37,277 nt of DNA from Octopus bimaculoides (lineage: Eukaryota). The stretch lies in assembly GCF_001194135.2 (NCBI RefSeq), contig NC_068983.1, forward strand, positions 36,112,772 to 36,150,048. The letters run 5' to 3'. The position numbers were made by a program, and so were the translations under genes. Shown here in pieces: positions 720 to 36,717 of the stretch. The notes below the pieces were generated by a model that made no database searches, was not told the DNA's origin, and saw nothing but the letters and a program-made list of their open reading frames with translations. The stretch's first letter is position 1, and each line of letters opens with the position of its first letter.

Positions 720-945
720 TCAACCCATCAGCATTTAAACCAGCCACATCTAGCCCAAATACTATACCTGTTTTATGTTCAAATTGACCATATTCAGCCT
801 CTCACACCTACCCTACAATGTCACATTAAAAATAAACAAGTACATCATCAAAATCTCAATGCAAAAATGATGCATGAGTAATTCAAAACAGTGTGGATAA
901 ATAAACATTACATTTGATACGGTAATCTGAATTCTAAAGGATTAA
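720..945. mobile_element. Degenerate TTAA MITE, same family as 15195-15627, opposite orientation
   Basis: Ends aacccatcagcatttaaac ... attctaaaggattaa; shared interior (ctctcacacctaccctacaatgtca). Confidence 0.7.
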
Positions 946-5555: not shown

Positions 5556-6072
5556 ACAGACAAAATGATAGATGTTATTTCTAATTTAGGTGCAGCCAGC
5601 AATTTTGAAGGAAGGGGTCAGTTGATGCTACTGACCCCAGTACTAACAAATACTGCACTTATATATTTTTTCTTCCTTTTCATGTTTTGCACACCTTTCC
5701 CTCTTTACTTCCTATCTTTCTATCTACATTTCTATTTATCCATCTGCCCTCTCTTTCTCTTTGCTTATCTTTCTATTACCTCCCCCTGTCTACTTTTGTT
5801 TCCCTTCTTCTTCACACATTCCTTTTTTCATATCTGTATTTTTGTCTCTAACTTTCTATCTACTCCTCTCTGCATTTCCTCTATTCCTATTCTATCTTCT
5901 CTCTGTATAACCATTCTCTTTCTCCCACTCTCTACCCACAATTACCCTTTCTTTCTCTCACTTCCCCCATCCTCAAATGATCATCCTGTTTCTAAAACAT
6001 TTTGGTCATTTCATTTTTTTTAGCTCCTGTATAAAATTTTTAATTTACTGTCAGCTCAGGGTTTGCCTATTC

Positions 6073-6468
6073 TTTTACTTGTTTCAGTCATTAGATTATG
6101 GCCATACTAGAGCACCACCTTGGAGAATTTTTGCAGAATGAATCAACCCCACTCCAATGCTTATTTGCAAGTCTGGTACTTATTACATTGATCTCTTTTG
6201 CCAAACCGCTAATTTATGGGGACGTAAACTGACCAACATTGGTTGTCAAGCGATGGCGGGGGGACAAACACAGACACACACACACACATATATATATACA
6301 TACATACGATGGGCTTTTATCAGTTTCCATCTACCAAATCCATTCACAAGGCTTTGGTTGGCCTGAGGCTATAGTAGAAGACACTTGCCCAAGGTGCCAC
6401 ACAGTGGGACTGAACCCGGAACCATGTGGTTGGGAAGCAAGCTTTTTACCACACAGCCACTCCTGCGC
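6073..6468 (-). mobile_element. tRNA-derived SINE, main family
   Basis: Head ggcgcaggagtggctgtgtggtaaaaagcttgcttcccaaccacatggttccgggttcagtccc with Pol III A/B-box-like motifs; internal (TA)/(TG) microsatellite. Confidence 0.85.
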
Positions 6469-6514
6469 CTAAGATGTATATATGGAACGATGATGATGAT
6501 GATGATGATGATGA

Positions 6515-6911: not shown

Positions 6912-7785
6912 TCTTTTACTTGTTTCAGTCATTAGACTGCAGCCATGCTGGGGCAATGCTTTGAAGTATTTTTAGTTGAATGTATTTACCCCAGGACTAA
7001 TTTTTTAAAGCCTAGTACTTATTCTATTACTTTCTTTTGCTGAACCACTAGGTTACGAGGATATAAAGACACCAGCACCAGTTGTCAAGAGTGATCGGGA
7101 GACAAACACAGACACACACACATCATCATCATCGTTTAACGTCCACTTTCCATGCTGGCATGGGTTGGACAGTTTGACTGAGGACTGGCAAGCCAGAGGG
7201 CTGCACCAGGCTCCAATCTGATCTGGCAAGGTTTCTACAGCTGGATGCCCTTCCTAACACCAACCACTTTGAGAGTGTAGTGGACACTTTTTATGTGCCA
7301 CTGGCAGAAGGGTCAGTCAGGCAGTACTGGCATCGACAACGCTTGAATGGTGCTTTTTACATGCCAGCGGCACGGGAGCTAGTCAGGCAGTACTGACATC
7401 AACCAGGCTTGAATGGGGCTTTTTATGTGCCAGCGGCATAAGAGCCAGTCATGCGGCACTGGCAATGATCACGCTTGAATGGTGCTTTTTACGTGCCACG
7501 GGCATGGGAGCCAGTCAGGCAGCACTGGCAACGACCCACGCTCGAATGGTGCTTCTTACGTGCCACCGGCAAAGGGGCCAGTCAGGCGGTACTGGCAACG
7601 ACCACACAATACACACACACACACACACACATATATATACAATGGGCTTTTTTCAATTTCCATCTACCAAATCCACTCACAAGGCTTTGGTTGGCCTGAG
7701 GCTATAGTAGAAGACACTTGCCCAAGGTATCATGCAGTGGGACTAAACCTGGTACCATGTGGTTGGGAAGCAAACTTCTTACCAC
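6912..7785 (-). mobile_element. Main-family SINE interrupted at its (CA)n by an RTE 3'-UTR insertion (about 7121-7600) with several ~66-bp monomers
   Basis: SINE tail 6912-7120 and body/head 7606-7785 flank a (CAT)n-tailed insert containing repeated gaatggtgcttttta..gtgcca units. Confidence 0.8.
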
Positions 7786-8035
7786 ACACACACACACATA
7801 TACATTTACTGTGTGTGTGTGTGTGCGTGTGTGTGTGTGTGTATGACACAAAAACATCATAGCCATGTGAAGGTTTAATAGATAAATGCATAATCATGTA
7901 GTCAGGTGTATATAGTAGTTTAAAACCACCTGATATTTATGTCAGTAGAGCTGATGAAAAGCATTACAAATGTGCTTTGCTGTCAGTAACATACAGAAAT
8001 ACTGAAATAGTAAGGACACAAATATTTTCAATTTG

Positions 8036-8711
8036 CTATGGCAGAGTTTCTACAGCTGGATGCCCTTCCTAACGCCAACCACTCAGAGAGTGTAGTGGGT
8101 GCTTTTACGTGTCACCCGCACAAAAACGGCCACGCTCAAAATGGTGTCTTTTATGTGCCACCCGCACAAGCCAGTCCAGGGGCACTGGCAACGATCTTAC
8201 TTGGCTTGCCGGGTCTTCTCACGCACAGCACATTTCCAAAGGTCTCGGTCAGTAGTCATCGCCTCGGTGAGGCCCAATGTACGAGGTCTTGCCTCACCAC
8301 CTCAGCCCAGGTCTTCCTGGGCCTACCTCTTCCNNNNNNNNNNNNNNNNNNNNNNNNNNNNNNNNNNNNNNNNNNNNNNNNNNNNNNNNNNNNNNNNNNN
8401 NNNNNNNNNNNNNNNNNNNNNNNNNNNNNNNNNNNNNNNNNNNNNNNNNNNNNNNNNNNNNNNNNNNNNNNNNNNNNNNNTACTTACACTCTGACGGGTA
8501 TTCACATTGATATTACACATCCAACGGAGCATACTGGCTTCATTCCTTGCGAGCTTACGTATGTCCTCAGCAGTTACAGCCCATGTTTCACTGCCATGTA
8601 GCATGGCTGTTCGTACGCATGCGTCATACAGTCTGCCTTTTACTCTGAGTGAGAGTCCCTTTGTCGCCAGCAGGGGTAAGAGCTCTCTAAACTTTGCCCA
8701 GGCTATTCTTA
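8036..8711 (-). mobile_element. RTE-clade LINE fragment: C-terminal part of the RT ORF plus 3' UTR
   Basis: Minus-strand translation RIAWAKFRELLPLLATKGLSLRVKGRLYDACVRTAMLHGSETW...RWMC, then after the gap GRGRPRKTWAEVVRQD (frameshift) ...DRDLWK...TAA at 8197-8199; these are typical RTE motifs. Confidence 0.9.
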
Positions 8712-11589: not shown

Positions 11590-12337
11590 CATAGGTCTGC
11601 TACATTGGGACTCAACAGTTGCAATTGTTGTACATCATAGAACCACACACATTATAATTGACCTTATATGTCTTATAAGGGAAAATAGAATAAAATAAAA
11701 TAAAATAAAAATCTGTGGAGTACAGATTTTAACTGAGTGCCGCCATTGCAAAAATAACAAAATACTCATATTTGTTGCGTAAAAGAAGCAATGGACAGAT
11801 TCAGTTATATGAACTATCAAGGACTCTGGACTACTTATAATATTGAGTATAGTTCCAGTGTGCTGTAAGTAATATATAAACTTCAGACTGAAGACTGATG
11901 GTATTCTTTTGTAACAAAGCTCCTTTGTGTAGAAGAGAAAAGTTCATGTTTTTAATCATCATCATTTAACATCCGTTTTCCATGCTGGCGTGGGTTGGAT
12001 GGTTTGACAGGAGCTGGTAAGCAGGAGAGCTGCACCAGGCTCTAGTTGTATGTTTTGGCATGGTTTCTCTGACCGGATGCCCTTCCTAATGCCAACCACT
12101 TTATAGAGTCTACTGTGTGCCTTTTACATGGTGTCAGCATGGGTGAATGAGCTTATTGTATACAGTGCTTAAGTGTATTACAATTCAAAATTGCATATCA
12201 CATAGAAACCACTTTTATTTTTGAGGACATTGTGTAATGTTCCATTTGTCATGTCAAATCATTCCTCAAAATTCAAATACATAACTTCTAGCTTTTAACA
12301 TTGTTTTATAGCTTTGTCAAAAGAATGAGGTTGGTAC

Positions 12338-13678: not shown

Positions 13679-14639
13679 TATTTGTATTATGGTTTTTAAT
13701 GATGTAGAATATCTCTAGCTTATTAGGATTCTACTGTTTCACTAGTACTTGTATAGATATCTAGAAAATAAGTATTATTCAAGATAATATTAAGCAATTC
13801 AAAGCATTAAAAATATTATTAAGAATTACAGATATTTAACAATAATATAATAATATATATTTCAGTGAAACAAAACCATGTAAGAAGATTCTTTTGGAAA
13901 GTACATCTATCTTCATTTATCACAGGTGTTTGGTTAAAAACAAAAAACACCTTTTTAAAACAAATCAGTTATAAATGAATGATAGAACATATGGGAAAAA
14001 TTGGTTTTGTTCCTTGACCCCAGGTTTTCCTGAGCATTGTGGATGGTCACTGATGCATGCTTTTGTAGTCTAAACAGAATCTTTGATTGTCAACCACGTT
14101 GTTAAGCATAACATGACTCACAAGTGTATTATATTATCCCAGATCAGTAACAAATTAATTAGTGATAAACGAGGATAGATGTACTAGAAAACGGAATCTA
14201 CATAAAGGTTGTACAAAATTAGAGATAGTAATGAAAGGGAAAATATACATTATTTTCAAGAATTATAAAAAGAAACAATATTTAATTTAATTTTTGTTTG
14301 AATTTGCAAAATGTAATTTACCTAAAATTCCATTTGGTGGCTGAGGGTATGTCTGTTTAAACTGTGGTCTGTAGTTTTGTTTGTTGGGTGGCTACAATAA
14401 TAATAAAAAACCATAAACCTCATTGTTAAGTGAAAACGTCTAATACAAATGTATCAAATAACGGTGTTAATGAAGTTGCAACCAAAGGTGAAAGCCTTTC
14501 GCCTGGCAGGTGTCGTGTGTTCAAGTAGCACAGGCCCAGTTGTCATCTAGAGACTGCTTGTATACAAAACCAGAGGCAGAGAAGAAGGTGAGATAAAGAG
14601 GCAAACCAAACAGTAATTGAATGCTGGATCAGGAGTGAA

Positions 14640-14900
14640 GCCAGTAGAATGGGATTCCGACAGCAAATGAAAGTAAAATGGAATAAAATAGGACTCTTTG
14701 AAATAAATGAGAAGGTGCAGATAGTGCCAATTATTGTTGGGTCCTAGGGAACAGTATTGGAAGGCATTAAGGGGAATATAAAAGAAAAGGAGCATAATTT
14801 CGGCAATAAAATTGCATGCAGTTACAGCAATTTAGTATGGCACTGGAATCCTCAAGTGGACAGAGGAGGAACTAAAGGAGTGCCTGGTGTACCCTTGTCA
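14640..14900 (+). mobile_element. Highly degenerate non-LTR retrotransposon remnant
   Basis: Translates to EKVQIVPIIVGS*GTV (resembling restriction-like endonuclease C-termini of R2/R4/NeSL-type elements) and YG.GILKWTEEELK-like RT remnants. Confidence 0.4.
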
Positions 14901-15194
14901 GACTGGTAGTATATTGGGCTTCATACATTTGCACCTCAGAGTCACTTTGATGGCATGTGCTGCTCTCTCACTCAATAACACATAACATTTTGAAAATGGT
15001 GAATACCATCAGTTTTTTTTACATAAAGTAAATTCTTATTAAATTTCATTAAAACACAGTTTATATCATGGAACCCCAGATTTATTTTATGAAATTCTGG
15101 GACTACTTGGCATCCACTTTGAAAAACACTGATATATATGATACCATGTAGATTTATATGGTGGCTGTATTTGTCACCAAGTTTGGAACATTAA

Positions 15195-15627
15195 CCCTTT
15201 AGCATTCAAACTGGAATAATAATAGAAGAGACAGCATGAGGACAACACTTGTTGAGAAGTAAGTGATATTTCACTCGGTCTTTATATTGATTTTACTCGC
15301 CTGGTTGTTACAGTTCTTATTGAGATGAGGATCTATTGGGTTGGCACCACCCCTGTGCACCATTGACAACAATAGTAACACTATCTCATTAGCAGGTTGG
15401 GAAAATAATGGCTTCTCAACTTCTTCAAGAAGCTGCGAATATGAACCTTTTATTCATATTGTTTCGAATTAATCCTGAATTATCTGTGGCTTTGAGATTT
15501 CACTGATGTGATTGCTTATTTTCAGAATAACATTGTAAGATAGGTGTGAGAAGCCAGATCTAGCCAGTTTAAACATAAAACAAGTAGAATATTAAGGCCA
15601 GATATGGCCGGTTTAAATGCTAAAGGG
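15195..15627. mobile_element. TTAA-flanked piggyBac-like MITE carrying captured host sequence
   Basis: TTAA at 15191-15194 and 15628-15631; TIRs ccctttagcattcaaactgg / ccggtttaaatgctaaaggg; the right part matches family members at 720-945 and about 31540-31747. Confidence 0.85.
15210..15452 (-). pseudogene. Captured copy of 15637-15869 (most of exon 15718-15872 plus downstream intron) inside a MITE
   Basis: Direct repeat with about 9 substitutions across the exonic part; donor changed from gtaagt to gcgagt; native acceptor absent. Confidence 0.9.
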
Positions 15628-15717
15628 TTAATAATTACTGGAATAATGATAGAAGAGGACAACAGTTGTTGAGAAGCAAGTGATATTTCACTTGGTCTTT
15701 ATATTGATTTTACTTAC

Positions 15718-15872
15718 CTGGTTGTTACAGTTCTTATTGAGATGAGGATCCATCGGGTTGGAACCACCCCTGTGCGCCATTGACGACAATAGTAACACTA
15801 TCTCGTCAGCAGGTTGGTAAAATAATGGCTTCTCAACTTCTTCAAGAAGCTGTGAATATGAACCTTTTACTT
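15718..15872 (-). CDS. Probable exon (VKGSYSQLLEEVEKPLFYQPADEIVLLLSSMAHRGGSNPMDPHLNKNCNNQ)
   Basis: Acceptor tttgtttgttccgcag|, consensus donor CAG|gtaagt; 155 nt; only the phase 1 to 0 frame is open. Confidence 0.75.
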
Positions 15873-16315
15873 CTGCGGAACAAACAAATACTAGATAGAA
15901 AATTGCTCATGAAAATGTAGATGATGTTGGATGACATTCACATGGAAACAAAAATAATTTAAATGCTAATAAAATCACTAGAATTTGAAAAGACAAACAA
16001 ATGTCAGACAATGTCTGTAAGAAACAGTACATTTAGCAGCAGCAGCAGCAGCAATAATGATAATAATAATTGAGGTATGTCAGCAGACTGTGAGGAGAAG
16101 AAATATCAAACAGAAAATGAGTTTTATCACACCACACCATCTTTAAAAAGGGAAAGCCATAAAATAATATAATTCTTGATGCGTCTATAAAGACAGGGTG
16201 ATAATAACTGCATCATGAGTCAACTCAATCAGGGTTGACCTAGGGTTAAACAAAAACATTCACATGTTTAAAATAAATGAATATGAATTCAGTTATTTTC
16301 TTTTATAAATGATAC

Positions 16316-16451
16316 TATTTTCCTGCACCAACCAATGTACAATATTGTACATTTCCTTAATAATTCTTTCATCACTATTGCAACAATTATCGCAAAGTCT
16401 ATGGTTCATTAATGAAGTCAGAATAAGACTGAATATGTCTGGAGTTATTTC
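16316..16451 (-). CDS. Candidate exon (EITPDIFSLILTSLMNHRLCDNCCNSDERIIKEMYNIVHWLVQEN)
   Basis: Protein-like open frame; acceptor ...ctgacaaataagag| (an alternative AG lies 2 nt upstream), donor AATA|gtatca; phase 0 to 1 fits 15872. Confidence 0.5.
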
Positions 16452-16609
16452 CTCTTATTTGTCAGCAAAAATTATATTAGTCATTGAATAATATGCTGTT
16501 TTATTCTCTCATTTCTTTTAAATGCTCTATAATTCAAACAGCTACATACACACACATTGATAGATACACAGAAAGATATATTCATCACAAGGTCCAGCCC
16601 TTGTTGTAC

Positions 16610-16880
16610 AGTGGTAGCTTATGTGTGTGAATGACCCTGAGAGCTATGCCAGTGGAATACTAGCTCCTGGTAGGGCCTTCCATGACAGACAGGTCCAAGG
16701 ATAGAGGCTAGACGAATAGGCAGCATGTCTCCCCAGAAGTAAAAGGGCCAACAACCCTACCTAGAAAATAGCAAAGTTACAGGAGCATTGATTATAATTC
16801 AAAACCAACTCAAGAGAGGATAACCTAGAACCAAGAACAGTGGAGAAAAGTCATCGATGGCCAATGTTCCATAGAGATAT
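16610..16880 (+). mobile_element. Possible internally deleted RTE-type element (5' leader joined to a 3' end)
   Basis: ccctgagagctatgcc...agctcctggtagggc...acaggtccaaggatagaggctagacga resembles RTE 5' leaders, and cagtggagaaaagtcatcgatggccaatgttcc resembles RTE 3' ends; both comparisons are from memory. Confidence 0.45.
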
Positions 16881-17574: not shown

Positions 17575-19107
17575 CTAAATATTACTAAAAAAAATATACA
17601 AATGAATATATATATATATGTAGTTTGCCTATTAAAACTGTGTACAGTGAAACCTGTACAATTTCAAATATACTAAGTTTCAATTAAGCAGAAGTTTGTA
17701 ACTAGATGCAAGGAAAATTCCAGTTATTTATCAATAAGATATCTGTTGAGTTGTTATTAAGTACAACCACCTGTTGTGCTAAAATTACAGACATAATCTC
17801 CATGTTATGGACTCCCATGAAGATCAAAACATACATAGTTATGACAAGATCAAGACTATTCCTTAAACACTGACAGCACTTCAATGAAGGATGCAACAGC
17901 AGTGGTAACAGGTGAATCACAACTGCTCCTACCTATACACTTTCTGTTCCCTCATCAGCTAGGGAACAACAGAAGTGGCACTATTTCATTGTCACAAAGC
18001 AGTGAGCTGGCAGAAATGTTAGCACGCTGGACAAAGTGCTTAGCAGTATTTCGCCCGTCGCTATGTTCTGAGTTGAAATTAGAATAAGTGAAGGGAGAGG
18101 AGAGAAAATAGTAATTCAGTGAAGAAGTAGTGAGAGTAATAGCCCTGACTAAGAGAGAAAGAGTGAGAGAAAGGAAGTGGCAAAGAGTGCATCATGTATA
18201 TTCTGTTTTTCTTTGTCACAACACATGAATGAGAAAGGAAGGGGTGAAAAAAATCAGTGTTTCAACTCTGTGTGAGTGTATGTGTGTGTGTGTATGTGTG
18301 TGCGTGTGTGTGTGTTTGTGTGCAGTGGAAATGGGATGGTGAATATTCAACGCTGAAAAGAAAAATCAAACAGCATTTCAACTCTGAGTTTATGCATGTA
18401 TATGTGTACATGTACAAGGGAAGTATGTGAATGCTTGTATCTGTGATTATTATGTACCTTATTTTGTACCTTATTTATATATAAAATACTACAATTAGCC
18501 GTCATTTTTGATGGCATGGTGCCAACTAGTATATTATAATTTATATTTAATTGAATCAGAGATGGTACATTTTTACTGACTCTAACTTCAAGACTCTTGA
18601 CTCCACAGATTTGCACACAATATACCATATATATCATCATCATCATCATTTAACATCCGCTTTCCATGCTAGCATAGGTAGGATGATTTGACTGAGGACT
18701 GGTGAACCAGATGGCTACACCAGGCTCCAATCTGATTTGGCAGAGTTTCTACAGCTGGATGCCCTTCCTAACGCCAACCACTCCGAGAGTGTAGTGGGTG
18801 CTTTTATGTGCCACCGGCACGAAGGCCAGTCTGGAGGTACTAGCAATACACACACACATATGAATATATAAAAATACAATGCCCATTATTATATTATAAT
18901 GTGTTAAAATTTCCAATTTCACAGATATTAATTTGATTATTTCCTTGCATTGAAAGAAATCAAATAGCTTAAGACATTCAAACTGAATAGAAGCACCATT
19001 GACGTAACAACATTTTTTTCTTATTGCTGGTTATGAATGACTGAATTTCAGTGTATATATTTATAAATGTATGCGCACGCACACACACACTCTCTCTGTC
19101 TCACAAT

Positions 19108-19145
<38 letters not shown>

Positions 19146-21529
19146 ATATATATATATATATATANNNNNNNNNNNNNNNNNNNNNNNNNNNNNNNNNNNN
19201 NNNNNNNNNNNNNNNNNNNNNNNNNNNNNNNNNNNNNTATATAGGGTTGAACAGACAGAACACAACAAAGAGAAAAAGTTAGACGAAAGCAGAGCAAATG
19301 GGAAACTAAATGAAAACTTAACAGATGGAAAATATAGACAAACACACGATACACAAAATATTTACAGCTGAGTTTTCCTCATCAGTCAATGACCTAAAAT
19401 ATCACAGTGGTTTTGTGCCATTACCATTGAGACCATTCAATCTTGGAGGTGCCAGAGCTGTTATTAAGCTACTGGGAAAAAGCTAACGAATTTATACTAA
19501 GACTGAAACAAACAAGACATTGTATAAATACAACATATGAAGAATTATGCATATATAATGGCACGAAGCCTTACGGCTATATACATCAGAAGAAAGAAAT
19601 AACACTTACACATACATACACACATAACCTCCTCATTGTCATTTTACATTCATTTTCCAAGCTGGCATGGGTTTGACAGGTCATGATGTTACAAGCATTT
19701 CTTATTGGGACCACTGTTCTCATAAAACTGGTGCTTGTATGCATCATTTATATGAACAGATGTATGCACATGTACACATGTTGTACATGTGCATACATCC
19801 ATTCATATAAGTGTGTATAAATATTCATACACACATATATACATTATATGAATATAATCTTCATTACTGTTTCCATTATCATCAGCACTATTTACATCAT
19901 CTTTCCTGTGATGTTCAATGCTCTCATGTTTGTCCCAGCCTGGTCGGCTTTAGGCTATATCTACAATAAATATCTGCCAATTCTCACCATCTCACAGTCT
20001 CTCTTCACCCAGCTTGTATCATCCATTTCCTTCAAATGTTAAAAACCAATAATGCAGTTGTCTCCCTTCTGAGTCAACAAGATCTTTATGAAATCATTCA
20101 ACCTGCTAGAAATAGCAACCAAATCTCAATATCCTTTTGTCTTAAATAAAAGGAAGAACTATTATCATCATTTAATGTCCATTTTTCATGCTGGCATGGG
20201 GGGAGGGGCGCTTGACAGGAACTGGCAAGGCCAGGGGTTGCACCAGGTTCCATAGTCTGTTTTTGCTTGGGTTTTACAGTTGGATACCCTTCCTAATGCC
20301 AACCACTTTATAAGATGTACAGGGTGCTTCTTATATGGCACTATCACCAGTGCTTTTTACGTGACACCATCACCAGTGTTTTTCATGTGGCAACAGCACT
20401 GGCACAAACGCTTTCTATGTGGCCAACACCAATGCTTAATGTAGTACTAGATATACAAAAAGATGGGACAGCTAAATTAGAACTGACCTAGGGCTATACA
20501 ACAAGTGACATACTCTGAAAATGCTGAACTTTGGAAAGATAAACTGGACACTTGCATAAAAATAAATGTTGTATGGCAAAATGACCAACAAATGATTCAA
20601 ACTGGGCTCAAATTTTCAAATTCTATAAGAATTTGGCTTTAATCCTTGAGCAAAATATGCTGTTACATATACTAAGAGTGAACATCTTGATTAAACTAAA
20701 CAACTGTTCAACCCATGCCAGCATGGGAAACAGACATTAAATGATGATGCCAACAATCTGACAACTGAAAGGGCTTATAGGTTCCATAGATAAGGCTATA
20801 TTTCATCATTAAATAATTACTCTATCTCTGTATTAACTAGTTCAAATCCTGCCACAGTCAACTTTGCCTTTCATCCCTCCTGGGTTAATAAAATTAATAA
20901 GTAGCAGTCATTTACTGGGGAGGGCAAGGGAATCAATTCCCCACTCCCCTGAAAATTGCTAGCCTTGTGCCTAACTCAGAATCAAAAGTTGGTGAGCAAA
21001 CAGTGTATGTTCCAGATCTTTACATTCTAAGTTCAATTCCTGCCAAGGTCAATACTGCCTTTTATCTCACCAGGATTAACAAAATCAAGCACCAGGTTTG
21101 GACTGAGGCCAATGGCATTGACTAACAAACTCCTTTCTAAACTACTGGCGTCTTTCTGCCTAAATAACAATTATTATTATTATATGTTTGACTTTTTCTT
21201 TGTATTTGTACAAGTTGGCTCCAAGTTTCACCCAGAAACTTTAAGAGACAATAAGTTAGAAGTTCAAGTTGGTGTTATGCCTAGGGTGTCATATATTTGG
21301 TTTTGCACATAGTATTGTTCTAGAGAATGTTTAAGAAAACATAAGAAAATTATAAGTTTGTTTTAACATTTGAGATTACATAGCCAGTATTTTATGTAGG
21401 TTATTATTGTTATTATAGATGTTGCACAGTATACAATAACTTGAGGTTATTGATTGAAGATGTTGTCTACTGGGGGTTGGTACTGTCTGTCAAGTCACAA
21501 CAAAGGCCTCAGATTATTATTATTATGTC

Positions 21530-23940: not shown

Positions 23941-24270
23941 AACTGGCTCCTGTACCGGTGGCACGTAAAAAGCACCACCCGAATGTGGCCAGTGCCAATG
24001 CACCCTGACTGGTTCCCATGCTGGTGGCATGTAAAAAGCACTATCCAAACCTGATTGATGCCAGGTCCGCCTGACTGGCTCCTGTGCTGCGGCATGTAAA
24101 ATGCACCTACTACACTCTTGGAGTGGTTGGTGTTAGGAAGGGCATCCAGCTATAGAAACATTGCCAGATCAAATTGGAGCCTGGTGCAGCCACTGGCTTT
24201 CCAGGACTCAGTCAAACTGTCCAACTCATGCCAGCATGGAAAACGGACGTTGAACGATGATGATGATGAT
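23941..24270 (+). mobile_element. RTE 3'-UTR insertion with about two monomers and (GAT)n tail
   Basis: Same terminus as 24806-25563, 26415-26652, 18635-18845 (minus), 9530-9775 (minus), 11955-12145 (minus), 20163-20430 (minus) and 22740-22940. Confidence 0.8.
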
Positions 24271-24803
24271 GGTGGTGATGGAAATGAGTAAGTGCTAGGT
24301 TAACCCTTTCGATACCATATTTCTGTTGAAATACACTGCTTTTGTTTTAATTAATTTTGAAAATAATGAAGAATTTAGTAAGTGGTTGAAAAAAAAGAAA
24401 GAACATCAGAGATGCTTTGCCCCACACAGAAACTACAGAAGCTACTCAGAGGTTTTGCAAGCTCTTATAAATCTGTTGCAATGCTGGAAACGCTTCTGTA
24501 TCATCAGCTGGTACCTCAGGGTCACAAGCATTTCACCCCTTAGCTTGTATGCTTCACCTGAGTTGGGCAGCAAGGAGTGAGCTGGTCTTCACCTACAGAA
24601 CGATTTCACTCGCAGTCTCTTACTGTCATTAACCCATTAACTCCCAGAGTACTTAAATTTCTGAATATTACTTTTAAATGTTTACAAATTATTGAAAATA
24701 GGTTAAAATGAAAAAAATAATTATTAAAACCCCTTTAGTTCAAGTAGAAATGGAAATTCTTGGTGTCCTATAAATAGGATACTGAGACAATGTGATATAG
24801 CTT

Positions 24804-25159
24804 AGGATTTTCGAGCGAGACCGTTGCTGGTTCCCCTGGACTGGCTCATGTGCAGGCGACACATGAAATCTTTCGAGTGAGATCGTTGCCAGTGCCCCTG
24901 GACTGGCTCTTGTACGGGTGACACAAGAAATTTTTCGAGCGAGATTGTTGCCAGTACCACTGGACTGGCTCTTGTGCGGGGCCGTTGTAGGATTTTCGAG
25001 CGAGATCGTTGCTGGTTCCCCTGGACTGGCTCATGTGCGGGCGACACATGAAATCTTTCGAGTGAGATCGTTGCCAGTGCCCTTGGACTGGCTCTTGTGC
25101 GGGTGACACAAGAAATTTTTCGAGCGAGATTGTTGCCAGTACCACTGGACTGGCTCTTG
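24804..25159 (+). repeat. Higher-order tandem repeat: 185-bp period made of three 61-62 bp monomers (ABC-ABC), running into an N-gap
   Basis: Monomer A (aggattttcgagcgaga.cgttgctggttcccctgg) recurs at 24804 and 24989; the B and C variants recur with the same spacing. Confidence 0.9.
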
Positions 25160-25532
25160 NNNNNNNNNNNNNNNNNNNNNNNNNNNNNNNNNNNNNNNNN
25201 NNNNNNNNNNNNNNNNNNNNNNNNNNNNNNNNNNNNNNNNNNNNNNNNNNNNNNNNNNNNNNNNNNNNNNNNNNNNNNNNNNNNNNNNNNNNNNNNNNNN
25301 NNNNNNNNNNNNNNNNNNNNNNNNNNNNNNNNNNNNNNNNNNNNNNNNNNNNNNNNNNNNNNNNNNNNNNNNNGTAAAAGCACCCACTACACTCTCTGAG
25401 TGGTTGGCGTTAGGAAGGGCATCCAGCTGTAGAAACTCTGCCAAATCAGATTGGAGCCTGGTGTAGCCATCTGGTTTCACCAGTCCTCAGTCAAATCGTC
25501 CAACCCATGCTAGCATGGAAAGCGGACGTTAA

Positions 25533-25563
<31 letters not shown>
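24806..25563 (+). mobile_element. 5'-truncated RTE LINE 3' UTR with an expanded minisatellite and a (GAC)n tail
   Basis: Monomer identical in type to the sequence after the RTE stop codon at 8197; conserved terminus ...gcatggaaagcggacgttaaac(gac)n; possible TTAG TSD at 24802-24805 and 25565-25568. Confidence 0.85.
25160..25373. other. Assembly gap (N run); other gaps at 8334-8480, 19165-19237 and 30828-30837
   Basis: N runs, all within or beside repeats. Confidence 1.
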
Positions 25564-26414: not shown

Positions 26415-26652
26415 CCATTTTGAGCGTGGTCGTTGCCAGTACCGCCTGACTGGCCTTCGTGCGGGTGACACATAAAAGCACCCACTACACTCTGAGTGGT
26501 TGGCGTTAGGAAGGGCATCCAGCTGTAGAAACTCTGCCAAATCAGATTGGAGCCTGGTGTTGCCATCCGGTTTCACCAGTCCTCAGTCAAATCGTCCAAC
26601 CCATGCTAGCATGGAAAGCAGACGTTAAACGATGATGATGATGATGATGATG
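26415..26652 (+). mobile_element. Young RTE 3'-UTR insertion with a single monomer
   Basis: Nearly identical to 25374-25540 and to the reverse complement of 18635-18845. Confidence 0.85.
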
Positions 26653-28030: not shown

Positions 28031-28100
28031 TTAAATTTAATGAAGAATTATAGTTACAACTTTGTATGCCCTACAGGATCAGGAAAAGGATCTTTGGCTA

Positions 28101-28228
28101 TGAATTTCTGAAACTCTCCTGATAAGTTCTTCAAATGATTTATCGGAGAAAAGAGATCGAGGATTCTTTTGGTTACTTTTGGAAATGGTTGTTTGATTGC
28201 ATCTTGTGCAAGATTTCTTTGATATTTT
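28101..28228 (-). pseudogene. Degenerate partial duplicate of the 5' part of the 29280-30003 exon
   Basis: Aligns with 29837-29989 (gaatttctgaaactctcctgataagttcttc...atcggagaaaagag...ggattcttttggttacttttggaaa...gcatcttgtgca); carries a 22-nt deletion and a 3-nt deletion, so the frame is shifted. Confidence 0.85.
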
Positions 28229-28863: not shown

Positions 28864-29279
28864 CGTCATTCAACACAAAACATCCCTACAAGAATATGGA
28901 TCTTTGAAAATAACTTAATGGTCGATGAAACCATTCCAAACAAAGTTAAAAAAATGATTCAACAGAAGCTTTATTTTTTTTGCTATCTTCTTAAGAAAAT
29001 CCAACTGTCAATGCATATAAACAGTAAAACTAGATATATCTCTAAGCAACCTTTGGACTTGCTACATCTGTTCTGTTGAGTGTTCTATATTCACATAACT
29101 AGGTTTTTGTGAGAAAGTTAAAGTATGTAAACGAAAAAGGATAAACACAAGCATTTCCAAAACGTGAAACAGAATGAGAAAGAATTTGTTATGAAAAGAA
29201 CCAATAAATGAATGAATAATGCTATAATATCAGCAGAAAAATGGTCTTTCAGTGAGCAAGAACTGAAAGACACACATAC

Positions 29280-30003
29280 CTTTAGTCTTAGCCACAATAC
29301 ATTTATCGGATGATTTTTGCCCATTGTCCAATTCACTGGACTTTTTCTTTTTCAGTTTTTTCCCTGTACACAGAGTAGAAGAAACTTGTTTAAGGTCTAA
29401 ATTTGAGAGCTGTTTTACAGATTGTCCTTCAACTATATACATTTTATCATCATTGATTTCCAAATCTGTTGCTACACTTTCACCAATTCCTGAGCATTTT
29501 ATTATTGCTGTGTCAAGTAATTCTGTTTCTATACTCAATGTTTTTTTCCTGGATTTTTTAACCCGTCGTCTCCTACGTTTTTGTTTCAAAGAAGTCTGAC
29601 TACCTTCCTCGGAGTGTTCACATTCACAGCTTTCATTATCAGAGTCACTGCTACCTTTCAGTTCACAAAAGTCATCTTTCTCCCTAGAAATATTTTTCAA
29701 TTTGTTTCTTTCTTCAAATTCTTTTGGAATTGTTTTCTCTGCATCAGAGTTTTTCTGAGAATTTATACTTTTATGAGATCTAGATTTTTTGTTTTTTCTC
29801 TTAGTTTTAATTGCTGATAAATTTTCTCTGACTAATTGAATTTCTGAAACTCTCCTGATAAGTTCTTCTTCAAATGATTTATCGGAGAAAAGAGGTTGAG
29901 GATTCTTTTGGTTACTTTTGGAAACGGTTGCTAGAACAGGCAGCTCACCTTGTTCAATTGCATCTTGTGCAGGATTTCTTTCAATTTTACAAGACTCCAT
30001 CAT
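29280..30003 (-). CDS. Large K/S/E-rich coding exon with basic NLS-like tracts (KQKRRRRRVKKSRKK, KKLKKKK); probably the first or near-first coding exon
   Basis: Longest ORF in the window (257 aa); strong donor AAAG|gtatgt at 29279 (phase 1); ATG ATG at 30003 with an in-frame TAA just upstream. Linkage to the DIS3L2-like exons is inferred from phases only. Confidence 0.75.
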
Positions 30004-31539
30004 AAAAATAATAAAATCTATTTACACTTTATTTCTTTAAAAATGCTATATTTGTCCATTATATTTATGTAGAAATAAAAGAAGAAAGAATTTCAAATTC
30101 ATATGAATTGAAATATATATATATATGGTTAAATTTTCAATATAACTGTTTTTCTAATTATTTTATGAGACTGAGTTAATAGAAATTTGAATGAACATGT
30201 TAAGCCGAATTTAAAAGTTAGGTTAATGTTGAAATAAAAACAAATGTTAGAGATCTTTCATTATAATTTCTGATGTATTTTTTAAAAAGGATATGTTGAT
30301 ATAAGGCAGATTTTGATTCTTGACACCAAAGGGATGTATATGGCATATAAATTGTGTGCCTTCAGTTGATACGCAAAACAAATCTGGTAGCCACAGTAGA
30401 GTAGACGCAATGCTGACAATGGCGGTGATAGAAAATATAACCCAGTCTTATTGTACGGTGACCAAGGATGGCATATATTTGTCTTTTTTCCTAGATACTT
30501 TTCTTCTCAATAATTCCCCAAAAACCTTTCCACTAACAGAGACGATGCCTAGGAATAAAGAAAATATTACAAAATAGTTTCCCAGAAATAAGAGTATTTA
30601 CAAAAGTAGCGAGGACAAAAATAGTTTACTGGAATTTTTGCGAAAGCAGGGAAGAGAGAGAAACTTTGGTAGTTATGAAAGTTTATGACCAGTTAGGACA
30701 AATTGTGGAAACTCAAGGAAGGCAAGCAAGAAGACTTGTAGTGAGCAATTATAGAAGCATTAAACAAGGCTTGTAAACAGCTGGTCAGTATTAGATTCAA
30801 AAATGAAGTTAAACAAAAAAAAAAAAANNNNNNNNNNAAAAAAAAAAAAAAAAAGAAAAGAAAAAAAGAAAGAAAACTGTCAGTTTATTTGAAATTAAAA
30901 CATGAAATGACTTTTGAGAGCTGATGATAAGAGATTATTGTGGCCATGCTTCTACATCGATTGCATTCTGATGAACAGCTTTTCCACAGGTTTTAAATTG
31001 CCATTGTTATCATCAGTAAGTATTTACATATTAGATATAAAGTTCATATTAGGGGCTGTATATTTAGACATTTTTTGTTTTCATCCATTTTACAATTCTA
31101 GAGCAGATGGGTTAATTTAAATATTTAGATATTTTCATATCACCAAAGTAATTATTTCAATGCAGGCACAGTCAATTGGTTATCATATAATTGTCGATGA
31201 ATAACCAATTAAGACAAGAAATTAATAATGCTATTCATCAGTTAAATTGCCAGTCAGAGATATAATCACAATCAAATGTTGAAAAGGCAGCAAAATGAAA
31301 GGAGGAGGGAATCAGATCAGAAAAAAACATGCAAAATTAGGGAAAATGTAGAAATTCGGGCTTTGAGGCTTTAAGGATAGAGAAAATATTGATGAAATAT
31401 AAGAAAATTACTTCAATGCTGCTTGTAATCCCTATTTGCAATCAAAATGGATACAAATATAAAGGAAGACAGCAGGATTAAAATATAGAGCAGCATAGCA
31501 TTGAGATATTTACTTCAGAATTATGGTGCAGCTGTAATA

Positions 31540-31747
31540 TAAGATAGGTCTTGGATTATTCAGTCAAGTGTAATGCTTATTTATTCATTGTTTTAGGTTA
31601 ATTATGCATTACCTCATAGCTTTGATATTTCAATAATGTGATTGTTCATTTTTAGAATGACAGTGTAGGGAAGGAGTGAGAAGCTAAATCTGCTGGTTTT
31701 AACAGAAAACAGGCAGAATATGGTTGGTTTAAATGCTAAAGAGTTAA
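31540..31747. mobile_element. Degenerate TTAA MITE, same family
   Basis: Right end ggtttaaatgctaaagagttaa; interior aligns with 15453-15627. Confidence 0.65.
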
Positions 31748-33419
31748 AGCTTTAGGCTTAACTTTCATTTTAATTAATGATTTCTTTGAAAAAGTGGAAT
31801 AAGAACATACACAAAAACATAGAGAGAGAGAGAGAGAGAGAGAGGGGGGGAGAGGGAATAGGGAGAAGGAGGTAAGGAGAAAGTAATCTTTAACACTAAA
31901 ATGTAACAAATGGCAGGAATCATTACAAAATCTGTTCAAGATGTACAAAAAAAAAAGGGCTTCCATCAATCAGGATTGATCTTATATCTGCACCTGCAGG
32001 AGTTTTTGTTTGTTTTTTAGTTGCTTTTATATCTTTTGAACTTGTTTTGAATATTATCAGCTGCCTGTGCCTGCAAGTCTTCATCTCCATTCCATTGATG
32101 TTGGTAAAAAGAGAAGCCACTGCTTTAGGGCCAAAACAGCTCAATGCCAGATTTAGCTACTTAAGCTACACAATGGTAACTTTACCCACATGCAATATGT
32201 GACTGGTAAATAAATTACAATCCATGTGATTGGTAAATAAAACTCCCTCTAGTATGTGCTTAAAAATCTATAAACAAGGGATTGTCTCTTAGATGAGTTT
32301 GTTTAGAACCTCTACACAGAGTTTTGTCTATTGCACAATTAATCCCAACATATCAATATTTTTCAACTCAGTTTGACATACATGAGTCTTTGCCATGTTT
32401 GTATTTAGTATACAGACAACTATCCTGAGGGATTTTTATTTTTGTTACCTCAGCCATATTATTATAATTAGCTACTCTAATTCTGGTGTGACCAGTGGCT
32501 AACACTCGGTCATAGGTTAAAAGTCCAAGCTAAACAAAGTATGCTAACGAAAACAGCATATTATATTTAGCTTGAAAATGATGACTATCTTTGCACAGGA
32601 AATGTTTACAGCATATAAAACTCAAAAGAGAAATTACCTCTATTTTATTCTATGTTCCTTGACCTTCAGAAATATTTTGTCTGCATAAAGTGATTAAATG
32701 ATTAATATATTCCTGTATATAGTCCAAGGAAGGAGGTTTTTAAAAAAAACTTTTACTGTTTCACATGGAATTTTTTTAATAAATTAATACATTAGTACAA
32801 GTGAGGGAGCTTTTTTTTTAATGATTTGGGACAATTTGAATATTGTAAGAGCAGTTCAGATGTTACAAAAGAGATATTTAGAGAGTAACTGGGAGAGAAA
32901 GACAGGTCACAGTTGATTTGGAGTTACTTTTATCAGATCTATATTATTACATTTGATGGATAATATTATGAAAACAAAGGGTAATGGAAAACTTCTCAAT
33001 TACACCTGTCTAAACTATGTCAAAATAGTATGGCAGAAATTAAATTCATTATAAATGATGATGACAATGATGGTGATGTTTTACATGGTGATGATGATGA
33101 TGAAATTGAATTTAGAATGTTAAATCTTTTTTCTTTGATGCTAAAATAAAAACTGAAATGAAGTATGATTGATGCTAAATAGCAAACACACATACACTAG
33201 ACACACACATACAAGTAGCAAAAAAAAAAAAGAACCAACTTTGCTAGCTGGTCACTGCAACCAGCTGTGAAATGTATCCAATGAAATTACCATAGTATAA
33301 AATATCAAAACTGACATATTTGTCATATTATTGTGATATTGTGAAAATGGCATTCAACGTCAACTTTCACCAAACACTAATTAAAAATAAATTGAATAAA
33401 CATCTATATAATTAATAAT

Positions 33420-34230
33420 CATTACCGTTGTTTAATGTCTGTTTTTTATACTGGCATAGGTTGGATGGTTTGACTGAGGACTGGCAAGCCAAGAGGCTGC
33501 ACCAGGCTCCAGTCTGATCTGGTAAGGTTTCTACAGCTGGATGCCCCTCCTAATGCCAACCACTCTGAGTGTAGTGGGTGCATTTTACATACCACCTGCA
33601 CAGGAGCCACTCAGGCAGCACTGGCATCGGCCATGTTCATCCAATATATTTAACAACATTCTACATTTAGTAACCAAATAAAACAGGTGAGCCAAATTAT
33701 AATCATAATAAACAAGAAGGATTTATCTTTTCATAAAAAAGCACAATTCAAGCATGGCTGATGCCAGTGCCACCTGACTGGCAACTGTGCCAGTGGCACG
33801 TAAAGAGCACCATTCAAGCATGGTTGATACCAGTGCTGCCTGATTGGCACCCATGCCGGTGGCACGTAAAAAGCACCATTTGAACATGGCCGATACCAGT
33901 GCTGTGTAATTGGCACCTGTGCCAGTGGCATATAAAATGCACTATTCAAGCATGGCTGATACCAGTGCTGCCTGATTGGCACCCATGCTGGTGGCACGTA
34001 AAAAGCACCATTCGAGCATGACCAATGCCAGTGCTGCCTGACTAGCTCTTGTGCTCTTTAAAAAGCACCCACTACACTCTCGGAGTGGTTGCTGTTAGGA
34101 AGGGCATCCAGCTGTAGAAACCTTGCCAAATCAGATTGGAGCCTGGTGCAGCCCCCAGGCTTGCCAGTTCTCAGTCAAACCGTCCAACCCATGCCAGCAT
34201 GGAAAGCAAACATTAAACGATGATGATGAT
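33420..34230. repeat. Inverted pair of RTE 3'-end copies; the plus copy has about five ~66-bp monomers
   Basis: Minus copy 33420-33640; plus copy 33735-34230 with repeated aagcaccattcaagcatggttgataccagtgctgcctgattggcacccatg units. Confidence 0.8.
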
Positions 34231-35451
34231 GACTTATAACTATTTTGTAAACTAAAATAAAAAAAAATATTGGCCACACAATCACAGGAAATATACAATG
34301 AAAATTTTTTAATTTTCTTAAATTAAACAACAGGGATGAAAATTGTTTATTCTGAAGTAAGAGAAGTTGTAGCAGATCTAGCAAAATGTCTTTGCATTAG
34401 TGTTGTGATGAAATATCACTGGTTGTCAGATAACCTTTGAGTATAACAGAAGATCCTCATTAATGAATCAGTCATATATATGTTCTGAGTTCAAATTACA
34501 CTAGTAATCAACTTTGCACTTCACCACTTCAGCTCACTATAATTAGTACTAGATGTATACTGGTATCAGCTTATCAACTATACTGCCTTTCTACAAATTT
34601 GTGGCCTTGTGCCAATGTAAGAAATACTTATTATGAGGGTTGTTGGCAGAAATGTTAGAGTGTCACATTCTACAATATGTAACTACAGATCTTTATGTTC
34701 AGAGTTCAAACGATACTAAGTTCGACTTTGCCTTCCATCCTTCTGGGGTTGATAAAATAAAGTGTCAGTCAAATACTTGATTTGATTCCAATCGATTACA
34801 TCAGCCACCAAAATGTATGGCTTTGTGCCAATGAGAAAAATCATCATCACGACATAGGAAAGGTTGTGCACCATATTTAGATACTGACATGGAACTGTTC
34901 ATGTCTTAAAATAAACTAATAACAATGGTAAAAGTAAAACTTGCCCTAAAGCTAACTCAGAAAGAGCAAGATGCCTGGTGATAGGAGGTTCTTGGGAAGA
35001 CATGCTCACATCAGTAAACTGAGTTCTAGAAGCGCTGTGTGTTCCACTCACACATAAGAAAACTTTCCATACTCCCTACCCCAACAAACCAAACTACATC
35101 TCCACATCTCTTCTCTTCCTCACATGTCTACTTCATGCTCTATGCTTACGTCCCACTCCCCAATCTTGTCCTCTTGGCCCTGTTTCACTGTATCATTGCT
35201 ATCCACTAACTCCCACCCCCACCAACCTGTGTGTTCCACCCACACGTAACAAAAAAACTTTTCACACACCCTACCCCAACAAACCACTCATGTGTAGCAA
35301 GAAAACTTCTCACACACCCTACCCCAAAAAACCAAACTACATATCTACATCTCTTCTCTTCCTCACATTTCCTCCTTCATGCACAATGTACACAAACTGA
35401 AGGAAGCCTGTCGTATATGTATGTATTTGTGCATGTATACTCTTCTCTGGA

Positions 35452-35845: not shown

Positions 35846-36076
35846 TCTTCTCTGGACATCACATGATGGTTGTAAATAAATATCATCATCATACAAGCTG
35901 GCTTGTTCATTTTCAGTCTGCCATGAAAAACATGCCTGGCCATTGGGAAATATTTGCTTTCTTGGAAATAGCTGTAGAAAATCTGACTCAACAAATTCTG
36001 TTTGATCTATGCAAGCATGGAAAAGTAGACATTAAATGATGATGATGATCTGTTTAAATTGCAATGATGTTTATAT

Positions 36077-36465
36077 ACTCTTTTACTTGTTTCAGCCATT
36101 TGACTGCAGCCATGCTGGAGCACCACCTTTAGTAAAGCAAATTGACCCCAGGACTTATTCTTTGGAAGCCTAGTACTTATTCTATTGGTCTCTTTCGCCG
36201 AACCACTAAGTTACAGGGACGTAAACACACCACCATTGGTTGTCAAGCAATGCTGGGGGGACAAACACAGACACACAAACATACATATATATACACATAT
36301 ATACGACGGGCTTCTTTCAGTTTCCATCTACCAAATCCACTCACAAGGTTTTGGTTGGCCCGAGGCTATAGTAAAAGACACTCGCCCAAGGTGCCATGCA
36401 CTGGGAATGAACCTGGAACCGTGTGGTTGGTAAGCAAGCTATTTACCACACAGCCACTCCTGCAC
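36077..36465 (-). mobile_element. Main-family SINE
   Basis: Near-complete similarity to 6073-6468. Confidence 0.85.
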
Positions 36466-36717
36466 CTATATCTTGATATTTAATGATTGTGATGAAGAAA
36501 GAAACCTTGACCATGCCAGTTAGATAAGACTGGAACTTGTACGAGACAAAATACTTTCATTTTAAGCCTATTGTTGTTTAGTGTCAAGTTAGCTCAGATC
36601 AAGTCAAGTAAAGTTACAATCAAAAACATTCAAGGCCATAAATCACTCCATCTTATTTTTGAGAAGAGAGATCCAATGGGTACTTTATTCAGTGTGTTCC
36701 TTTTGTTCCAGTGTGCA

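Follow-up and report, generated by a model that had tools for sequence, protein, structure and literature searches.

A piggyBac-type MITE of Octopus bimaculoides that holds a copy of its own flanking DIS3L2 exon, probably acquired by templated repair

Introduction

How does a short relic of a DNA transposon come to hold a piece of the host exon beside which it lies, and is transposition of the element necessary for this? The question is raised by a locus in a 37,277-nucleotide stretch of Octopus bimaculoides DNA (NCBI RefSeq assembly GCF_001194135.2, contig NC_068983.1; referred to as the window), in which a TTAA-flanked element contains, between its two ends, a second copy of the sequence adjoining its right end. 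The locus is a clean case of a resident DNA-transposon relic gaining host coding sequence: one sequence suffices to read both junctions, the source at a distance of only 6 bp, the direction in which copying went, and the decay that followed. An original prediction, which had been made from the same DNA, attributed the structure to template switching onto the adjacent flank during gap repair. We herein describe the element, its insert, and the source exon, and weigh the readings by which the present arrangement may have arisen.

Results and Discussion

Structure of the TTAA element and its family

The focal element spans 15195-15627, with TTAA on both sides and 20-nt inverted ends (Table 1). 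Its two terminal inverted repeats (TIRs), CCCTTTAGCATTCAAACTGG and CCGGTTTAAATGCTAAAGGG, matched at 18 of 20 positions, and the element starts with 5'-CCC and ends with GGG-3', as is typical of the piggyBac type (terminal sequence: CCCTTTAGCATT). Being small and without coding capacity, and having TTAA duplications and CCC...GGG termini, the element behaves as a putative non-autonomous piggyBac-type (TTAA) MITE, in agreement with the original prediction of a piggyBac-like MITE with intact TIRs. Pfam searches with minus-strand translations gave no match for the MITE family, which is short and non-coding; no autonomous piggyBac with the same termini was present within the window; and scans of metagenome and viral contigs with the TIR pattern yielded a single chance hit, which fell within a bacterial gene for a membrane protein.

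Table 1. Features of the focal element, its family, and the DIS3L2 gene in the window
Feature	Coordinates	Strand	Evidence or remark
Left TTAA target-site duplication	15191..15194		Read directly from sequence
Left TIR, CCCTTTAGCATTCAAACTGG	15195..15214	+	Inverted-repeat search
Left-junction microhomology, ACTGG	15210-15214		Last 5 nt of TIR = first 5 nt of duplicated segment
Captured copy A, 243 bp	15210..15452	-	blastn, alignment
Right-junction microhomology, TTTA	15449..15452		Common to captured-segment end and MITE interior
Retained MITE interior, right-hand ~4/5 of plain element	15453..15607	+	Aligns to 901-722 (75.7%) and 31580-31747 (72.8%)
Right TIR	15608..15627	-	
Right TTAA target-site duplication	15628..15631		
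Parental segment B, 233 bp	15637..15869	-	81 nt of intron (15637-15717) and 152/155 exon nt
DIS3L2-like coding exon, 155 nt (2 nt + 51 codons)	15718..15872	-	Translation, phmmer, tblastn
Plain family copy, 218 bp	724..941	-	Flanks TCAA and TTAA; degenerate TIRs
Plain family copy	~31532..31743	+	Degenerate left end; TTAA at 31744-31747
Upstream DIS3L2 coding exon, 257-codon open frame	29230..30003	-	Residues 36-82 align weakly
tblastn match, cuttlefish residues 36-82	29880-29728	-	Weak
tblastn match, cuttlefish residues 309-359	15873-15721	-	Whole exon, end to end; E 3e-9
tblastn match, cuttlefish residues 428-454	3230-3150	-	63% identity; CSD1 exon, downstream
tblastn match, cuttlefish residues 455-489	2107-2003	-	63% identity; CSD1 exon, downstream
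tblastn match, cuttlefish residues 488-514	1230-1150	-	

Three copies of the family, with differing flanks, were found in the window by blastn and an nhmmer profile, and there were no further copies. The TIRs and target-site duplications (TSDs) of the focal element were much better preserved than those of the two others. In DNA folding, the z-score was -4.1 for the focal element and +0.6 for a degenerate family copy, a result that shows the ability of intact TIRs to pair and nothing further. Alignment of the other two copies was confined to the left TIR of the focal element and 15449-15631 (76% and 73%), and both carried approximately 24 nt (CGTATCAAATGTAATGTTTATTTA in the 724-941 copy) at the site of the 243-bp focal segment, where approximately 25 bp had been predicted. 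The plain element is approximately 212-218 bp long, and the reconstructed pre-capture element approximately 219 bp. Since the other copies do not contain the segment, the insert is not ordinary MITE interior.

Duplicated segment

The approximately 240-bp duplication of the flank, which was predicted to start 6 bp outside the right end of the element, was recovered at the same positions (copies A and B in Table 1). A and B were in direct orientation (blastn E value of 5e-93) and differed by 15 substitutions in 233 aligned bases (6.4%; K2P, 6.8%) plus one 10-bp indel; identity was 93.6% when only substitutions were considered and 89.7% with the indel counted, and the length ratio was 104%. Twelve substitutions were transitions and three were transversions, and eight of the 15 lay at CpG sites, as expected from the CpG-type differences noted previously. 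The 10-bp indel at 15231-15240, ACAGCATGAG, is present in A and absent from B; a GAG direct repeat occurs at its bounds, and it looks like slippage after the duplication. Copy B begins 6 bp past the right TTAA, has no TIRs of its own, and is the only parental sequence in the window; a second copy of the exon-bearing element was not found within the window by blastn.

An assembly artefact, in which only one exon copy exists and reads or haplotypes were mis-joined in the scaffold, is very improbable. The sequence is a draft scaffold with four N gaps in the window, which leaves some room for such errors; however, the closest gap is more than 3 kb from the focal locus, and the two copies differ by the substitutions and indel described above, in a pattern dominated by CpG decay. 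Furthermore, the junctions between the left TIR and the exon copy and between the exon copy and the MITE interior are unique, and haplotype collapse would not create them.

Source exon and host gene

The exon in the flank (15872..15718) has a pyrimidine tract and a CAG acceptor upstream, and its donor, CAG/GTAAGT, is the sole GGTAAGT on either strand of the window. The duplicate holds 152 nt of this exon (15869..15718) together with the donor, so that the flank does include a coding exon and its donor, as claimed. A phmmer search with the exon against 1.84 billion representative proteins gave three single-stretch matches at 56% identity: P0004, P0005, and P0006. P0006 (1239 aa) contains Rrp44-CSD1, Dis3-CSD2, RNB, and Dis3l2 C-terminal (Dis3l2_C_term) domains, and its 90% cluster includes DIS3L2 of the cuttlefish Acanthosepion pharaonis; P0004 is a neighbouring gene model in the same species. 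When P0006 was compared with the window by tblastn, five colinear minus-strand matches were obtained, with 51-63% identity across the well-matched exons (Table 1). These colinear matches place the 5' portion of a cephalopod DIS3L2 gene in the window and, since further exons of the gene lie downstream at 3230-3150 and 2107-2003, indicate that the MITE sits in the intron right after the source exon. The insert is host-derived: its source is a genuine coding exon of DIS3L2, copied together with the donor and 81 intron nt. Other searches were less productive: a word-indexed protein search with the 52-aa exon gave no match, Pfam gave only a sub-threshold DUF7797 for the exon, and neither this family nor any other was found when every open segment of the minus strand between 9.5 kb and 33 kb was scanned.

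That the duplicated segment might instead be the ordinary interior of a MITE subfamily, with the "exon" itself being MITE-derived, can be almost completely dismissed. Only three family members were examined, which is the sole point in its favour. Against it, the exon and its boundary are conserved in cuttlefish DIS3L2 mRNA-derived proteins, the other family copies do not contain the segment, and parental copy B lacks TIRs; the comparison of the three copies agreed with the host origin that had been predicted.

The upstream 257-codon frame (29230-30003) is the N-terminal exon of DIS3L2 and is rich in K, S, and E. It was also open in Logan contigs of a related species (L001/L002; SRR11869390/91), which encode 269 aa at 85% amino-acid identity. 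The DNA of these contigs was 85.6% identical to 28977-31068 of the window, a range outside which the focal site lies. Since amino-acid identity (85%) was similar to that of the surrounding DNA (85.6%), this exon is under weak constraint only. A six-frame query of 14400-16700 against Logan contigs, for orthologous loci and other MITE copies, gave no match.

Direction of copying and fate of the copy

On the minus strand, copy A comprises an exon-derived part (15452..15301, 152 nt), a GC donor (15300-15299), and an intron-derived part (15298..15215). It lacks the acceptor and the first 3 exon nt, and its donor is GC (cag/gcgagt) in place of the GT kept in B, as the original prediction had recognized. 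Identity with the cuttlefish protein was 61% for B and 53% for A; by tblastn, cuttlefish DIS3L2 matched copy A at 15453-15340 with 50-53% identity (E value of 3e-6). Among the six amino-acid differences between A and B, the cuttlefish sequence was able to polarise three (Y/S, S/L, and A/V), and at all three B carried the cuttlefish residue and A the derived one. When CpG was taken as ancestral, four CpG losses in the exon part were assigned to A and one, synonymous, to B. The cuttlefish residues and CpG losses, together with the acceptor, pyrimidine tract, and GT donor of B and the start of A 3 nt inside the exon, identify B as the source and A as derived; on these sequence grounds, copying evidently proceeded from B to A.

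The exon differences between A and B comprised six non-synonymous and three synonymous changes, and the probability of six or fewer amino-acid changes under random substitution was 0.61, so that this test is uninformative on selection. The frame of copy A is indeed free of stops, as previously noted, but this carries no weight: 79% of random sets of nine substitutions kept the frame open in a simulation. Judged from its changes, copy A is a decaying pseudo-exon in the downstream intron and probably has no function, while the parental exon stays conserved. Gene models of DIS3L2 should leave out the pseudo-exon at 15301-15452. It is improbable that the element is instead a multicopy Pack-piggyBac, transposase-competent now or until recently and with the DIS3L2 fragment at other TTAA sites, or that splicing includes the intronic copy in DIS3L2 transcripts as a poison or alternative exon; such splicing would use the near-consensus GC donor and an AG supplied by the MITE.

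Junctions and a single-event mechanism

Both junctions of the insert are internal to the element and not at its termini, which excludes joints made by transposase, including alternative transposition and end-bypass transduction. The predicted microhomology at the left junction (actgg) was present, and the right junction added a second, TTTA. For random breakpoints, the simulated chance of microhomology was 0.007 for at least 5 nt and 0.023 for at least 4 nt (approximately 3e-4 jointly), where the 5-nt value presumes that the original left TIR read ACTGG; the right TIR reads ACCGG. That both junctions carry microhomology suggests a single event guided by it, either templated repair or a template switch.

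A plausible course would be as follows. A MITE of approximately 219 bp would have resided in the DIS3L2 intron, 86 nt downstream of the exon donor on the transcribed minus strand. After a break or a stalled fork inside the MITE, a 3' end terminating in ACTGG may have annealed to the ACTGG of the flank 427 bp further on, in the sister chromatid or in the same duplex; synthesis would then have crossed the 81 intron nt and the donor and entered the exon for 152 of its 155 nt, and the new strand would have re-annealed through TTTA at the other side of the break. By this route, approximately 24 nt just inside the left TIR would have given way to 233 bp copied from the right flank of the element itself, giving a cis "Pack-TIR" that keeps both TIRs and both TTAA sites and is single-copy within the window. 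We consider that the resident MITE probably, though by no means certainly, captured its own flank in this manner, by one microhomology-guided templated repair and without transposition.

The same sequence, with the same two microhomology junctions, would be given exactly by two successive events: a 417-bp tandem duplication of 15453-15869 with a TTTA junction, followed by a microhomology-mediated deletion of approximately 205-210 bp between the left-TIR ACTGG and the ACTGG with which the first exon copy begins. This route is unlikely, as it requires two rare events with breakpoints that happen to leave a clean replacement; no intermediate is visible, and a single templated insertion is more economical.

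Several other candidates were rejected. A simple tandem duplication does not account for the locus because the sequence past copy B does not run on into the MITE. Insertion of the MITE into a pre-existing duplication would require the element to insert in two pieces, which it cannot do. Alternative or sister-chromatid transposition and end-bypass transduction conflict with the internal junctions and with the order of parts, namely, left TIR, flank copy, interior, and right TIR. Formation elsewhere and re-insertion beside the parent would be an implausible coincidence.

Was transposition involved?

The loss from the element was small: only approximately 24 nt (~11%), with approximately 80% retained intact. 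Non-CpG divergence since the duplication was approximately 1.6% per lineage; in contrast, the focal MITE had approximately 12 private non-CpG differences from the other copies in 166 columns (7%), a comparison of three family copies only, in which the focal value may have been raised by divergence between subfamilies. From these values, the MITE appears to be older than the duplication.

A second duplicate of a DIS3L2 exon fragment was found in the window: 28091-28225 is approximately 91% identical to 29825-29985 in direct orientation. The repeated fragment, from the 257-codon first coding exon, lies in the intron 1.7 kb downstream of its source; the two copies differ by indels of 3 bp and 22 bp, and inverted repeats were absent around the duplicate. 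Since this duplicate has no TIRs and is similar in age to the MITE capture, short cis duplications seem to occur here without any transposon.

In the excision reading, the element would have been excised by piggyBac activity and the whole-element gap repaired from the sister chromatid, with the strand from the left end switching to the right flank and back. This reading predicts the same junction microhomologies, and the well-preserved TIRs and TSDs suggest that the focal element may have been transposase-competent recently. The left breakpoint lies exactly at the inner edge of the TIR; by the criterion that Tan et al. 2021 (PMC8277862) apply, breakpoints near a terminus tend to favour excision. 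The gap-repair model itself has been demonstrated for P elements (cited in PMC8277862). On the other hand, the animal-wide survey attributed single-copy cis Pack-TIRs with microhomology and small deletions mostly to transposition-independent events (Tan et al. 2021, PMC8277862). Excision would also require two template switches and synthesis completed across the rest of the element, and is difficult to reconcile with an element that is approximately 80% intact, has lost only approximately 24 nt, and seems older than the duplication. Finally, a piggyBac donor site is normally sealed by direct ligation of its TTAA overhangs, with no synthesis. In 2008, Mitra, Fain-Thornton and Craig reportedly found that piggyBac excision is seamless and proceeds without gap-filling synthesis.

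The small loss, the age of the MITE, the second duplicate without TIRs, the seamless excision of piggyBac, and the conclusion of Tan et al. 2021 together make a transposition-independent trigger somewhat more likely than repair of an excision gap, and we regard the latter as possible but doubtful. With respect to the template switching during gap repair proposed in the original prediction, the switching is consistent with the microhomology at both junctions; the excision gap was not specifically favoured, because a transposition-independent break or fork stall fits equally well.

Comparison with known captures

Tan et al. 2021 (Nat Commun 12:4280, PMC8277862) surveyed 100 animal genomes and catalogued 370 Pack-TIRs in 55 of them; almost every one is single-copy. 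The parent was located within 15 kb in 56.9%, mostly within 5 kb, and the parents listed include some as near as 119-191 bp (e.g., entries 206, 257, and 284); microhomology at one or both breakpoints was found in 67.6%, exonic capture in 13.4%, and the medians were 224 bp for the insert and 4.6% for TE loss (PMC8277862). PiggyBac non-autonomous captors are also listed, e.g., medaka piggyBAC-N1_OL (PMC8277862). The original prediction had regarded local capture from an adjacent source as unusual for a TTAA element in an animal, a view that does not hold in light of 370 animal Pack-TIRs, many near their parent and with piggyBac captors among them.

A Pack-TIR in that survey has a non-TE insert of 100-5000 bp between TIR-bearing parts that each include at least 10 bp of the terminus (Tan et al. 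2021); here, 243 bp lie between a 20-nt left terminus and a 175-nt right part. The parent is to be at least 90% identical at a length ratio of 80-120% (Tan et al. 2021), and the present values are 93.6% (89.7% with the indel counted) and 104%. The survey pipeline also discarded parents with a TE within 100 bp, as a filter against segmental duplication (PMC8277862). Since the focal parent starts 6 bp from the TTAA of the element, such a case would have been dropped; however, this filter is a pipeline step and not a biological definition, and segmental duplication is excluded here because both junctions are inside the element. Captures from an element's own flank were filtered out of the published survey in this way, and may be under-counted.

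The focal capture is therefore an ordinary example of the animal Pack-TIR captures already catalogued: a short and degenerate TIR element, a nearby parent on the same chromosome, breakpoint microhomology, small TE loss, exonic capture, and an insert (233-243 bp) close to the survey median of 224 bp. It differs from the surveyed cases in its parent, just 6 bp from the element's own end, and in its host, a cephalopod mollusc; neither "octopus" nor "mollus" occurs in the main text of Tan et al. 2021, and "octopus" is absent from its supplements (PMC8277862). What is new here is the cephalopod host, the unusually short source distance, and capture from the element's own flank; no new mechanism is added, and neither function nor mobility is indicated.

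Plant Pack-MULE and Pack-CACTA elements likewise carry gene fragments between intact TIRs, and template switching or gap filling is favoured for their capture. Their superfamilies are different ones, in which the TSD is 9 bp or 3 bp long, and they are often multicopy, with trans capture from other chromosomes, whereas the focal element is of the TTAA/piggyBac type, with cis capture and no amplification evident in the window. Assignment to Pack-MULE itself (long Mutator-type TIRs and a 9-bp TSD) was rejected, as the focal element has 20-nt TIRs and a TTAA TSD.

Rubin and Levy, in 1997, reportedly described Ds derivatives with "filler DNA" from abortive gap repair. As in the filler DNA of Ds and P elements, an internal segment of a TIR element was replaced here by nearby sequence with short junction homologies; however, the Ds and P cases followed documented excision by an active transposase, usually with most of the interior deleted, and only approximately 24 nt were lost in the present case. 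Similarity was also seen to microhomology-mediated templated insertions (FoSTeS/MMBIR, polymerase-theta/synthesis-dependent MMEJ), which share junction microhomology of 4-5 nt and a small deletion, and which are general outcomes of repair or replication that do not need a transposon. An insert of 233 bp is long for templated insertions by end joining, and replicative template switching fits better.

Sequence context of the window

Two abundant families of SINE-like repeats were present, one with 12 or more copies and the other with 8 or more, at 70-94% identity. Examples are located at 1305-1465, 7121-7300, 11955-12130, 18633-18845, 24059-24270, 25375-25548, 26433-26645, 33415-33630, and 34061-34232, with further sites at 287-680, 6068-6502, 7606-7788, and 36076-36498. 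Most of the long "ORFs" in the window are fortuitous frames of these repeats, and neither Rfam nor ARAGORN reported anything over the window, the SINE-like families included. Tandem arrays with periods of approximately 66 bp and approximately 62 bp (7287-7604, 33736-34054, and 24803-25159) are attached to SINE-like repeats. Four N runs (8334-8480, 19165-19237, 25160-25373, and 30828-30837) indicate a draft scaffold; the third abuts the array at 24803-25159, the copy number of which is probably unreliable for this reason. The G+C content of the window is 36%, and the CpG observed/expected ratio is 0.28, as would be expected of a methylated animal genome.
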